Counted from the stretch's first letter, positions 15,390 to 30,730 are shown. The stretch: 64,000 nucleotides of DNA from Camelus ferus (GCF_009834535.1 NC_045713.1:14322001-14386000), one strand, 5' to 3'. Program-made: numbers and translations. Notes: generated by a model from the letters alone, not told the origin.

Positions 15390-18300
15390 TCAGGCCAGCA
15401 GAAGGAATGGGGGAGCCCAGAGCAGAGGGAGGAGCAGCAGCGGCGGGCTGAGGTCTGGCCTGTGAATGCTGTTTTTGACCATAACCATTCGGATCCATTC
15501 GTAGTGCGAGCTAACGTTGGTGTAGACGCCGGGCCGGTTCGGCCTACCGCAGCCCACTCCCCAGCTCACGATTCCAATCTGATACCACACCCCTTTCTTT
15601 TCACAGGCCAAGGGTCCGCCTGAGTCACCCTGGGGAGCAGCATGGGTGAGCCCAGCCTGGGGCAGGGCCGGAGGGGTGGGCAGAGAGGCTGGGAGAGCAG
15701 GAGGGGCTGTGGAGCTGGACAGACTGGATGCAAACCCCCTCCTCCCCCTGGAAGTGACCAAGCCTCAATTTCTGCATCTGCAAAATGGAGCAATAGTCTC
15801 TACTCCCCACCAGGGTCAACATGAGGACCAAATGAAGTACAGGGATACAGATTTCTCTCAGGCCTGGGGCTGGGGTGGTGGGATACTAGGGCCCAGGAGC
15901 CCTGGTTGGGGATGGAACACTCACAAAGCAAGCATCCTTGTCGCCTTGAGGATCGCCAGCACAAACCATGTCTCCCCAGATGTCATGGCGGAAAGAGGGC
16001 AGGGAGAACAGGTGGTTACACATGGTGGTGTTTATGATGCCGACCTCCACTTCCTGGAGGATGTAAGGAGATGGCAGTCCTGCCGAGGAGTTAAGGGGAC
16101 AGAAAAAGATGGCATCCTGAGCCTCACCTCTGCCATCTGGTTGGGAGGAATGGCACTGGCTATGGGGGAGAGGGGTCCCTGGGGCACCCACAGTGGCTGG
16201 GACACTGCCTTTGATCCCTCTGCTCAAGCCCAGCCCCCAGAACGTCATGGGTGAAGAACAATATCACAGAAGGATCTAATGGATGGGCAGGTGGATACAG
16301 CACCTTCCTGAGACTCTGTTTCCCTAATTGTTGCATGCAGATGACAGGCCCTGTCCCAGGCAATGAGGACAGACCTTAACACTCGCAGGGGCGGGGCTAG
16401 TGCAGCTGAGATGGTTTAGGATTAATTCAGTCCCACAGTAGCACCCAAGTGCCTGAGCAGGTGGAACCACCCTGGGCCTCTCTCGGTGCATTTGGACATT
16501 CCCGGGGCCGGAGCCCACAGCTCTACGATGCGCTCCTGCAGTACCCCTAGGATGCGGTGCAGTCATGCCCAGTTCTCAAGTAAGGAAAGATTCCGGGGCA
16601 GAAATGCCCTCCCCTGACCCCAGCACAGTTCCCAGAGTAGTGACAGAGCCTATGTGAACCCAGGTCTGTCCAATTCCTAAGTCTGGGCCCAAATCACCTC
16701 CTTATCCCGCAGAGAACGGTGACCACAATTACACCAAAAGCTGATGTGTAAGTAGAGCTTCCAGTCTGCTTGGCACTCTGCTAAACGCTCATATATGGAC
16801 ACTTTCAAGACTTGGAACCACCATCTCAGGTGGGAACTATTATTACCCCATTTTATAGATGAGGAAGCTGAGTTAGATGAAGTGCCTTGCCCAAAGTTTC
16901 CCAGCCAGCACACAGTACATCTGGTTTGGGGATGAGGAGGTGGGGCTCAAGAAGTCACCTGTGAGAATGAGGGTTGAGCAGGGAGCTGGATGTGACCACC
17001 AGTCAGCTGAGGTGGGAAGGGCACAGAGTCTGCCTGGCTGGGCCCCTCAGCTCACACCCATTCAGCTCTTTGGATCCAGGGAGTCTGCACAGAAGCCCTT
17101 TCTCTAGCCCCTCCCAGCGAAGGGAAAGGATGGGCTGTGTCTCCTGTGGACTCCTCTATCCCCCCTGCCAATTCCAGATGTGTGACATCGGGGACACATT
17201 CCCCTCTCTGGGCCCACGCTCTGGCTTCTCCATTGACCCATGGGGCCTTGGGCAATTTCCTTGTCTCTCCAAGCTTCCTCATCTGTAAAGTAGGTATAAA
17301 AATGTTTCCAGCCTTATTTGTAGGTAGGCTCCTGAAGGAAGAGAGTCCCTGGAGCCCAGAACAGGGCCAAGTATACACAGTGCACAAAAGGAGCTTTATC
17401 TGTTATGATCGCTGTGGTTAAGGGTGATGAAGGAGTGGGCTGGGCCAGGGAGTGGAGTGAAGGGCAGTCTAATTGGTGGGGCTAGAGTTTCAAAGGATTC
17501 TTGGTGAGACAGAAGTGGGTGAGAGCTCCCGCAAGCCCAAGGACTCCTGCAGAGATTTAGCAGAGAGCTGAGGCTGGAGTGAGGCTTGAAAATGCAAGGA
17601 GAGACAATGAGATGGATGTAGAAGAATGGGGGAGGATGCAGAGTGGGAAGACTGAATGGCTGGGGGAGGGGAGAATGCTTGAATAAATAATCCCTGAGGC
17701 CTTTCTGACCCTGTGGGCTGGGGGTGCAGGCCTGGGCTAGCTGGCCTCCCTCTCAACTCTGCTTCTGGCTCACAGTCTCCGGAAGGGCTGGGGAGCTGAG
17801 TGTGGGTCCAGGAAGGCCTACTCTGTTAGCGAGGAGCAGGAGTGGAAAGCAAGTGTGGAGAGAATGCCAAAGAAGAGGCACAGCCCAGGTGAGGACCACT
17901 GAGGTCGGTGCAGCTAAAACAAGTGGCCAGTGGCATGGCCCCCTTCCCCACCAGACCCGTCTGCCCCTGCCTCACCTTGATCTTCTTTGATGTCCCCCCA
18001 GCCGGTCACCCAGCAGTCAGTCCGGTTCTCGAACTCGTAGTTGTTGGCCAGGACACAGATGGGCTGGATGTACTTATTGTAGTTGACAGAGGTGGACAGC
18101 TTCAACAGGGCAATGTCAGACGAGGAACCCCCCATGTATCCGTGGCTCAAAAAAATCTGCTCCACCTGGTAACGGTTGTAATAGGCCTGTAGGTTCCAAA
18201 TGGATGGCATGGCGGATAGCTCACCAAACTGGGCTGTCCATTCGTAGGGATCATTGTTCCTGGTTGGAGAAAGAGAGCAGTCAGGAGTTCTCAGAGGGAC

Positions 18301-28994: not shown

Positions 28995-30730
28995 TGCTGT
29001 CATGGGAGTCCTGTCTGTGAGCCAGGTCCTTGGTCCATCCTGAAGGAAGGAGTGGGTAGAAAAGAGGGCAGCAGAGGGGGGTAGCCAGGACCCCAGCGTT
29101 ACAGGGATTGTTTGGGTGCTCTGGTTCCTGATATGTAGCTAGGGGACCCAGCCCCAGCAGAAGCTCAAAGCTGGGGCATGTGAGGTCCCACGTTCGCCAA
29201 CAGCCCTTGAACCAGAGAGGTCAACCTGGGGTAAGGCGAGGGCCAGGGTTCCCGTGGCTCCCTCTCCCCCAGGGGGCGCCCCAGCCCAGCACCGGAGCAG
29301 GCGGAAGAAGAGGGGGCGCTAAGCGGCGAGAGAAGAGGCCATGGACGCGCGGGTCGGGGCGCTGCTGCTGGCGCAGTTGTTGGTGCAGATCGAAGTCGGG
29401 AGGCAGGGTGAGCTCAGGCGGGGGCTGCCGGCGCAACTAGGGGTGATGGGGGAGGACGGGGCGCGTGGAGACCGAAGGGAGCTCACCTTCTCTCTTACCC
29501 CCACTTTCCCCACCCAGCGTTGCAGGATGAGGAACTGCTGCTTCCAGGTAAGGCCTCCAGGAGGCGCACTTCTCTGTTCAGGGCACCTGGACCGGCGCTT
29601 GAAGGGCGCCTCATCTTCTCCTCTCTCCCCCGCCTCAGGTTTCCAGAACTCGTCGTTGCTCACATGTAACTGATGGGCCCCTGGGGGAGGGGCGGGCACC
29701 TGCGGCCCACGTGGGGCGGGTCCCCAGCGTCCCTGTCTTCCTCTGCTGCGCGACCCCAGGACACGCGGTTCCCCAGGGAGTCCCTTCCCTTCGCGCACCC
29801 CGGTGGCTGAGGGTGGGCGAGGTGGACCCGCCTTCTGCAGCTCAGCCCCGTGTCCGTCTGTCCATCCTAGGGCCTTGCGGCAAACGGAGCATCCAGCCAC
29901 GGATAGTGGGTGGAAAGGACGCGGAGCTGGGGCGCTGGCCGTGGCAGGCCAGCCTGCGCCTCTGGGGAAGCCACCACTGCGGAGGGAGCCTGCTCAACCG
30001 CCGCTGGGTGCTCTCGGCCGCGCACTGCTTCCGAAAGTGAGTTTGGGGGCGGGCGGCCCGCTGACCGGGGTCTGCACCCGGGGATCTGCCCGCACATCGC
30101 ACTGGATGCGGCCCGGGTGTGCTGGTGAGCCCCAGGCCGGGCTGCAGCCGATTACACCCACAAGGTCCCCGTTGGTGCTCCTGGAGGAAACCCTGTGCAG
30201 TTTCTTCCAGAATGTTCTTCCAGAACATTCCCATGCACATTTGTGTGTCTTGTTCTTTTCTTTCTTTCTTTCACTTCTCCCCAAATGGCACCACCAGCCT
30301 CCACCTTCCTCATCCCACCTCCCAGTGGAGGTGAGCCCTGGGTTGGGAGGAGTGAGGGGAGGTGAGTCAGTGCTGGACACAGAGCCTGGCCTGTGGGGAT
30401 GGTCACCATGGAAGCTGTTTTGAGTCCAGTCTGCTGTGGCGCCTCCTTTCTGAGGAGGGCTCCGGGAGGTGCCAGGTGGTTGAGTACCTGGCCTGGTGAG
30501 CTGGCAGAAGAGGCACCCTCCTTCCCCCACTTCCAGCTCTCCCCCAAGTCCCCAGGTCGTGGGACTTTGCTGGAGGCTCTCTGGGCCCTCACCATTTCTG
30601 CCCTGGACTCTGGTGGATAGAAAGACCTGCTAATGGTCCGGGGGGAGCCCCGCAGCAGCCCTGGCCCTTTCCCTTCAGGGAGCAGCCCCAGAGCACTCAG
30701 GTGGCCCATTGTCCCTCTGAGGACCCCTGA
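28995..30730. repeat. Right 5' arm of the PRSS21/PRSS41 inverted repeat
   Basis: Inverted near-identical copy of 18281-20013. Confidence 0.97.
29170..30150. promoter_or_regulatory. CpG island / promoter of PRSS41
   Basis: CpG-dense mirror image of the PRSS21 island. Confidence 0.75.

Follow-up and report, generated by a model that had tools for sequence, protein, structure and literature searches.

The palindromes of the sex chromosomes (P1-P8 of the human Y and those of the primate X) have inverted arms around a unique spacer, a structure conserved across species, arm identity maintained by intrachromosomal conversion, and genes reported to be testis-expressed, and their sequence evolves in concert (PMC3723533, PMC8981503). 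The locus of the serine protease genes PRSS21 (testisin) and PRSS41 (TESSP-1) in a 64,000-nucleotide stretch of the Camelus ferus genome (GCF_009834535.1, NC_045713.1:14322001-14386000; this whole stretch is called the window, and positions are counted from its first letter) resembles them in these respects. Unlike them, it lies on an autosome, its arms measure no more than 5.6 and 11.5 kb, and it lacks an identity above 99% over whole arms, since only 1.7 and 0.6 kb are found at 98-99.5%. Its arms hold two functionally distinct genes, not two copies of one, and its tracts have no detected GC bias. A second close parallel is the partial concerted evolution of Caenorhabditis, where adjacent segments are discordant (PMC3966223), edges are sharp and introns are homogenised along with exons, and where conversion, as it probably is in the camel, would be limited by divergence and by selection on distinguishing sites. 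The PRSS21/PRSS41 locus differs from that case in its inverted, head-to-head arrangement, in having two tracts that flank a protected core, and in the independent recurrence of the pattern in several mammalian orders with differing tract limits. With the human PRSS21 and PRSS41 genes of 16p13.3, both reported to encode testis-specific, glycosylphosphatidylinositol (GPI)-anchored enzymes (PMC7834812), the camel genes share orthologous C-terminal exons, catalytic motifs and hydrophobic tails. Unlike human PRSS41, the PRSS41 genes of camelids, whales and carnivores have an exon 1 and a His exon (the exon of the catalytic His) derived from PRSS21. No description of conversion or of a palindrome at PRSS21/PRSS41 was found in the full-text literature, with subscription journals outside the scope of the search; the mechanism is ordinary interlocus gene conversion, at a locus apparently not described before in this light.

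An ancient inverted duplication gave rise to the two arms on which PRSS21 and PRSS41 stand head-to-head, and the palindrome is older than the split of camelids, cetaceans and carnivores. Recurrent non-allelic gene conversion between the arms has very probably homogenised two terminal tracts, one at the 5' end and one at the 3' end, around a core that is gene-specific. The original prediction, made from the window alone, had held that the near-identity of the arms reflects recent arm-to-arm conversion and was not inherited from the duplication, and that 5' segments should consequently group by species and core exons by gene. Comparison with the alpaca, whose locus (L001, L002) comes from a chromosome-level assembly, bears this out. 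The alpaca has the head-to-head layout and the identity mosaic of the camel, and the tract boundaries coincide. When both genes of both species are compared site by site, the 5' tract has 30 informative sites that favour a grouping by species and 6 that favour one by gene; in the core none groups by species and 441 group by gene (Fisher's exact test, p ~6e-42). Over the 1540 sites of the 5' tract without the His exon, the arms differ by 0.91% in the camel and 0.52% in the alpaca and the camel and alpaca orthologues by 2.4-2.9%, and therefore conversion continued after the camel/alpaca split. The corresponding values are 4.8% between arms in either species and 1.2-2.4% between orthologues for the 166 nt of the His exon, and 31% between arms in either species and 2.8-3.1% between orthologues for the core. 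If camel and alpaca separated roughly 17-25 million years ago, the common ancestry of the arms dates back, on average, only a few million years. In a maximum-likelihood tree of 5'-tract DNA, each paralogue is joined to its partner from the same lineage (92/93 for the camel, 100/99 for the alpaca, 100/100 for the baleen whales and 100/100 for the hyaena), and the protein tree of the C-terminal exons groups them by gene, so that adjacent segments of the same genes are discordant in the way predicted.

The identity of the two genes was established from exon models, made by mapping camelid proteins onto the window and taking the splice sites from the sequence, and from a tree of 104 mammalian proteins that used the Asp, exon-6 and Ser exons only. 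Both reading frames are intact, and both proteins have the catalytic His, Asp and Ser motifs, an Asp six residues before the catalytic Ser, and a hydrophobic C-terminal tail. The left gene has its place in the PRSS21 clade and over 225 columns shows no difference from the testisin of dromedary and Bactrian camel; its tblastn matches to Camelus testisin models are 99-100% per exon, with 91% over the exon-6 match. The right gene falls in the PRSS41 clade beside that of the alpaca, with a Shimodaira-Hasegawa-like approximate likelihood ratio test (SH-aLRT) value of 99. By these placements the left gene, with its catalytic triad and its ZG16B-like neighbour, is assigned as the PRSS21 orthologue and the right gene, through its Asp, exon-6 and Ser exons, as the PRSS41 orthologue; tree and gene-model mapping agree with the head-to-head pair that had been proposed. 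The segment of exon 1 and the His exon of the right gene, unlike its C-terminal exons, falls with PRSS21, and the exon 1 proteins of the two genes are identical at 22 of 22 residues. The NCBI label for the PRSS41 orthologues of camelids, carnivores and whales is 'testisin-like', a name that probably stems from these PRSS21-derived N-terminal exons. Camelid PRSS41 has a ratio of non-synonymous to synonymous change of ~0.2, which means purifying selection; the ratio of 0.3 for camel and alpaca PRSS21 is unreliable, as a 3-nt indel in the Ser exon left the codons misaligned.

Repeat search and blastn place inverted arms at 18935-20013 and 28995-30073 (1079 nt, 99%) and at 18255-18763 and 30248-30756 (95%), in keeping with the claim that 18281-20013 and 28995-30730 are inverted copies. 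Global alignment of the arms counts 24 mismatches and three indel events in the whole 5' tract (98.6% identity) and, over the 876 bp from 20013 to 19138 that comprise the upstream region, exon 1, the micro-exons and introns, exactly the 4 mismatches originally reported (99.54%). The intron after the His exon is 98.2% identical between the arms, and non-coding sequence in general (upstream region, introns and 3' tract) has been homogenised along with the coding sequence. The upstream sequence common to the arms amounts to only 346 bp before the ATG. At its inner edge the tract ends ~30-60 bp before the acceptor of the Asp exon: mismatches pile up from 18319 on the left and 30692 on the right, the acceptor being at 18259 and 30751, and arm identity falls from 95-99% to 64-80% within ~100 bp. 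The collapse of identity had been placed at the acceptor itself. Beyond it, the core exons are 63-79% identical in DNA and much of the core intron sequence is barely alignable; the intron blocks for which 85-88% identity had been given do align, at a slightly lower 80-86%. That the catalytic cores stay distinct is true of the Asp, exon-6 and Ser exons, which are gene-specific, but the exon with the catalytic His lies inside the converted tract. The ratio of observed to expected CpG is 0.35-0.46 in the tracts versus 0.04-0.17 in the core introns and spacer.

Homogenisation was expected in the promoters and 5' halves of the genes, where it is indeed found, but it is not confined there, since a second tract begins at the poly(A) signal. 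This 3' tract measures 586 bp, with 11 mismatches between the arms (98.1% identity), and starts beyond the stop codons, at a distance of ~50 bp on the left and 117 bp on the right. Because the AATAAA lies only ~20 nt inside it, most of the tract is probably situated downstream of the PRSS21 and PRSS41 transcripts. Its identity between camel and whale (79-88%) and between camel and hyaena (76-78%) is like that of neighbouring sequence; conservation between orders does not set the tract apart, and its arm-to-arm identity, too, therefore comes from copying. In the outer and older homogenised block, which follows the 3' tract outward, sites group by gene within camelids. The tree of a 900-bp 3' block places the hyaena copies together, the whale copies together and the four camelid copies together, and in the inner ~400 bp of the 3' tract (15340-14943 on the left) the four-way comparison gives 3 sites by species and none by gene. 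The 3' tract was homogenised in the camelid stem and independently in other lineages.

The His exon shows which gene was copied and which sites escaped. The PRSS41 His exons of primates, colugos, tree shrew, bats and horse form a clade of their own (SH-aLRT 99), and those of camelids, whale and carnivores fall among the PRSS21 exons, as do those of pig and musk deer, less clearly. This placement in the tree identifies PRSS21 as the donor and PRSS41 as the recipient of the His exon. In the camel, the exon contains 8 of the 24 mismatches of the tract and is 95.2% identical between the arms, an island inside a 99% tract. On the left arm its variants are at 19126, 19113, 19111, 19106, 19087, 19040, 18976 and 18975. 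Five of the six by-gene sites of the 5' tract are in the 200-bp alignment window with the His exon, and the sixth is in the adjoining one. The gene-specific residues, which are the same in camel and alpaca, are Q versus K near the exon start, E versus R at the exon end and, just before the activation cleavage (marked by a slash), P-T in PRSS21 (IPTR/IVGG) versus Q-P in PRSS41 (IQPR/IVGG). Between these by-gene clusters, both alpaca copies have Val and both camel copies Leu; a change by species inside the exon means that conversion passed through it. The motif Q-P or Q-S is common to the PRSS41 of cat, pig and musk deer, and therefore the island is old PRSS41 sequence that has not been overwritten; in whales and big cats the activation-motif island has been overwritten. 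Positive selection on the island was considered and rejected, as the paralogue changes in the His exon are 6 non-synonymous and 2 synonymous, a ratio of ~1.0, and are old differences that persist. The island would have been kept by selection, or by short and patchy tracts, rather than produced by adaptive change.

The P1 residue, immediately before the cleavage site, is a further variable of the same exon. Among the 33 readable PRSS41 sequences it is Leu in 17 (primates, colugos, horse, a fruit bat and vespertilionid bats) and Arg in 16 (camelids, pig, musk deer, whale, carnivores and phyllostomid/mormoopid bats); it is Arg in 69 of 70 other sequences, and PRSS21 almost always has Arg. Conversion was rejected as the sole source of the Arg in PRSS41, given that the phyllostomid/mormoopid bats have it on a true PRSS41-type His exon; that camel PRSS41 keeps the PRSS41-type Q-P just before its Arg also disfavours such an origin.

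The palindrome and its conversion are not specific to the camel and are seen in the DNA of the alpaca, two baleen whales and a hyaena, the whales and the hyaena having tracts of their own. The arms of the humpback whale (L004) are 99% identical over the 760 nt available, and those of Rice's whale have 1 mismatch in 770 nt (99.87%). When the two whales are compared, the 5' tracts of PRSS21 and PRSS41 show ~99% identity over 1.9 kb, and divergence sets in ~100 nt into the Asp exon; in the 3' blocks of the whales identity is 91-94%, and the outer arm end maps to the camel position. The hyaena (L005) has PRSS21, an intact third trypsin-like gene and PRSS41 in camel order and orientation. Its tracts are patchy: the upstream region and exon 1 match at 100% over 300 bp, the His exon at 98% where it begins, a 300-bp stretch across the end of the Asp exon and into the next intron at 99-100%, and sequence downstream of the gene at 94-95%. 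Identity between camel and whale is 78-90% over the whole arm, with 80% for the 5' block and 88% and 79% for the blocks of the 3' tract; none of these blocks exceeds adjacent sequence in conservation, and selection alone does not account for the likeness of the arms. A wider survey of paralogue identity in proteins, which depends on the accuracy of the gene models, gives 95-100% for exon 1 in human, horse, tiger, hyaena, bear and whale and 86-95% in lemurs; in the gene models of Myotis, Otolemur and pig exon 1 is not homogenised, and some of these models may have a wrong first exon. For the His exon, the paralogues are 84-100% identical in carnivores and whales and 51-70% in primates, bats, pig and horse; for the Ser exon they are 93-100% identical in tiger, bear and seal.

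In the afrotherians (elephants, manatee, aardvark and golden mole), the trees of the C-terminal exons and of the His exon both have a single clade with both paralogues inside, which could have arisen by whole-gene conversion or by independent duplication in Afrotheria.

Several observations weigh against recurrent conversion as set out here, or restrict it. The 3'-block tree groups the camelid copies of the 3' tract, taken whole, by gene, and conversion of the 3' end after the camel/alpaca split, which rests on few sites, is less secure than that of the 5' end. No excess of AT-to-GC changes is present among 28 concerted substitutions polarised with the whale, of which 6 are AT-to-GC and 14 GC-to-AT, a small sample from a tract of 64% G+C counted with no correction for CpG decay. 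The harbour seal scaffold (L003 2142-6096, 10001-19434, 28365-29434) is arranged differently: a PRSS41-type core with its large intron occupies the PRSS21 position, downstream of the third trypsin gene and adjoining ZG16B, and the 3' end of this gene resembles PRSS21. In the seal, either the arms have recombined and really swapped their cores, or the scaffold was put together wrongly where the ends are repeated. Such an anomaly shows that loci of this kind are hard to assemble, as near-identical inverted repeats are in general, and it raises the question of whether the camel arm ends were themselves copied or mis-joined in assembly, PRSS41 really having a 5' end of its own. The camel arms, however, are not exact copies, since 24 differences and 3 indel events separate them in the 5' tract. 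Independent protein models have the gene-specific variants of the His exon without any change, dromedary and Bactrian testisin models those of the PRSS21 type and a dromedary model those of the PRSS41 type, and the alpaca has the same gene-specific residues in this exon. The head-to-head structure is found in the chromosome-level assemblies of alpaca, humpback whale and Rice's whale and in the hyaena assembly. A little more weight comes from 14 DNA runs, of at least five studies and two organisms, that hold 88-94% of the sampled words of 28300-32300, a region that spans both junctions of the right-arm 5' tract. The strongest evidence is the repetition of the structure and of the gene-specific variants in five other assemblies and in independent camel protein models, and an artefact is extremely unlikely.

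If the arms are real, their likeness might still date from a single event, a duplication or conversion in the camelid ancestor that overwrote the ends of PRSS41 and was followed by no further exchange. Equal tract boundaries in camel and alpaca and the by-gene grouping of the outer 3' block within camelids are what such a replacement would leave behind. The 30 substitutions that are found on both arms of one species and on neither arm of the other are not, and the arm divergence of 0.5-0.9% is a third or less of the divergence between camel and alpaca orthologues; at least one conversion after the split is needed in each camelid lineage, with further independent events in whales and hyaena, which makes a single replacement very unlikely. 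That the identity reflects extreme purifying selection on regulatory and N-terminal sequence common to both genes, and that nothing was copied between the arms, is scarcely credible. The tracts do hold the proximal upstream region, the signal peptide and the poly(A) signal, and have a higher CpG ratio than the core introns and spacer, but their introns are as identical as their exons and the 5' tract differs by 2.4-2.9% between camel and alpaca. The path from camel to whale in the 5'-tract tree is ~0.19 changes per site versus 0.014 between the camel arms, camel and whale 5' regions are ~80% identical in direct alignment, and selection cannot make paralogues of more than 60 million years more alike than orthologues of ~20 million years. 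A separate matter is whether homogenisation is itself selected, as a means of linking the two proteases in their expression or trafficking in male germ cells; the original proposal was of one shared promoter that would lock their expression together. The near-identity of exon 1 between paralogues in most orders sampled, the conservation of the arm ends from camel to whale and the reported testis-specific, GPI-anchored nature of both enzymes (PMC7834812) would be consistent with it. The tract extents vary widely by lineage, as neutral, opportunistic conversion would have it, exon 1 is not homogenised in the Myotis, Otolemur and pig models, and the shared upstream sequence amounts to 346 bp only; selected coupling seems rather unlikely.

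The features of the locus are listed in Table 1. The duplication takes in each gene together with ~350 bp before its ATG and ~950 bp after its stop codon, and similarity ends at 14440 on the left and at 40467 on the right. The extra length of the right arm comes from a ~7.7-kb intron of PRSS41, the one that separates the Asp exon from exon 6; this intron is low in G+C, contains runs of N, and has counterparts in the PRSS41 of whale, hyaena and seal. The 30-nt cassette micro-exon is found in alpaca gene models, and related peptides are found in horse, tiger and fruit-bat models. Two RNA-seq runs tagged 'reproductive system metagenome' contain 85% of the words sampled from 28300-32300; as this region is mostly intron and spacer, this suggests that the two libraries contain unspliced RNA or genomic DNA.

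Table 1. Features of the PRSS21/PRSS41 palindrome and its surroundings in the Camelus ferus window
Feature	Position	Strand	Remarks
Left arm, PRSS21 (testisin) gene	14440-20013	-	346 bp upstream of ATG to ~950 bp past stop; 5.6 kb
Right arm, PRSS41 gene	28995-40467	+	11.5 kb; longer through one large intron
Unique spacer	20014-28994	.	8981 bp; identity between sides ~45-50% beyond 20013 / 28995
5' conversion tract, left copy	18285-20013	-	346 bp upstream, exon 1, micro-exons, His exon, following intron
5' conversion tract, right copy	28995-30725	+	98.6% identical to left copy
3' conversion tract, left copy	14753-15338	-	AATAAA at 15319
3' conversion tract, right copy	39583-40168	+	AATAAA at 39602
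Outer homogenised block	14440-14752	-	90% identical to 40169-40467; ~300 bp
PRSS21 exon 1	19601-19667	-	ATG through signal peptide
PRSS21 cassette micro-exon, 30 nt	19461-19490	-	in frame, skippable; predicted from splice sites
PRSS21 cassette micro-exon, 27 nt	19343-19369	-	in frame; predicted from splice sites
PRSS21 His exon	18972-19137	-	propeptide end, activation site, catalytic His
PRSS21 Asp exon	17976-18259	-	start of diverged core; 72% DNA identity to PRSS41 Asp exon
PRSS21 exon 6	15925-16079	-	63% DNA identity to PRSS41 exon 6
PRSS21 Ser exon	15390-15629	-	GDSGGP, hydrophobic tail, stop; 79% DNA identity to PRSS41 counterpart
PRSS41 exon 1	29341-29407	+	ATG through signal peptide
PRSS41 twin of 30-nt micro-exon	29518-29547	+	
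PRSS41 twin of 27-nt micro-exon	29639-29665	+	
PRSS41 His exon	29871-30036	+	activation motif IQPR/IVGG
PRSS41 Asp exon	30751-31034	+	
PRSS41 exon 6	38730-38884	+	
PRSS41 Ser exon	39239-39466	+	GDSGGP, hydrophobic tail, stop
Decayed Asp-exon relic of third trypsin-like gene, in spacer	24746-24946	-	conserved Cys of CWVTGWG motif lost
ZG16B-like region	~3617-5219	-	75-79% similar to seal jacalin-domain gene; ~10 kb beyond PRSS21 3' end
Further trypsin-like gene	45127-46504	+	downstream of PRSS41

The window has the gene order ZG16B-like (~3.6-5.2 kb), PRSS21, spacer, PRSS41 and the further trypsin-like gene (45.1-46.5 kb), and in the alpaca a ubiquitin-domain gene comes after the latter. This camelid order fits the human order PRSS33, PRSS41, PRSS21 (PMC6774566). 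The region at ~3617-5219 is probably ZG16B. The further trypsin-like gene is, to judge from its position, probably PRSS33; around it, the window is collinear at 97% with alpaca L001 23501-33581, for which the annotation gives a trypsin of 352 amino acids and then the ubiquitin-domain gene. The spacer of the humpback whale is 9128 bp long and has its inner boundary where the camel has it. The third trypsin-like gene, of which the camel spacer holds a decayed relic, is annotated as intact (332 amino acids) in the hyaena spacer (L005 4862-9452, minus strand) and has left a Ser-exon relic in the humpback whale (L004 3358-3450). Its relatives, found by exhaustive search and cluster look-up, are annotated as 'serine protease 33-like'; a protein-cluster search with the spacer gene returned generic trypsin clusters only, and a word-index search returned unnamed fragments. 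The low-G+C part of the spacer also contains a tandem array (26342-26780) of 3.3-3.7 copies of a 119-bp unit with 93-97% matches, and the unit resembles the head of a short interspersed element (SINE) derived from a transfer RNA, with an A/T-rich tail.

Recurrent conversion between the arms may be pictured as follows. Breaks in one arm would be repaired by strand invasion into the other, leaving conversion tracts of the non-allelic type. The tracts would stop where divergence, which is 31% in the core, prevents the formation of heteroduplex, and the boundary would in this way reinforce itself. Conversions that reach the specificity-determining exons and the activation motif would be removed by selection; the hyaena tract inside the Asp exon means that the core is not mechanically immune to conversion. 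The shared 5' and 3' ends may have regulatory consequences. It may be speculated that the higher CpG ratio of the tracts fits open, unmethylated germline chromatin in which breaks start. A broader account can be given as well, in which the locus would be a placental-wide autosomal palindrome of more than 80 million years, selection would maintain the conversion of the proximal upstream region, exon 1 and the 3' end for co-regulation and co-trafficking and would keep conversion out of the substrate-binding exons and, for some lineages, out of the activation motif as well, and conversion would have repeatedly rewritten the zymogen activation of PRSS41, by a testisin-type propeptide in whales and big cats; on present evidence this account is doubtful.

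For annotation, the consequence is that PRSS41 goes under the label 'testisin-like' in camelids, carnivores and whales, and trees based on the N-terminal part mislead. Short reads and short-read assemblies may assign the shared ends to the wrong gene or swap the cores, as the seal scaffold may show. The occurrence of Arg or Leu at P1 raises the question of whether the activation of PRSS41 differs by order. The locus also indicates that small autosomal palindromes with genes reported to be testis-expressed can persist across mammalian orders. It is a natural experiment in which conversion and selection act side by side on one 26-kb stretch: neutral-looking flanks have been homogenised repeatedly, the exons that determine specificity have been spared, and a few codons of the activation site resist inside an exon that has otherwise been converted.

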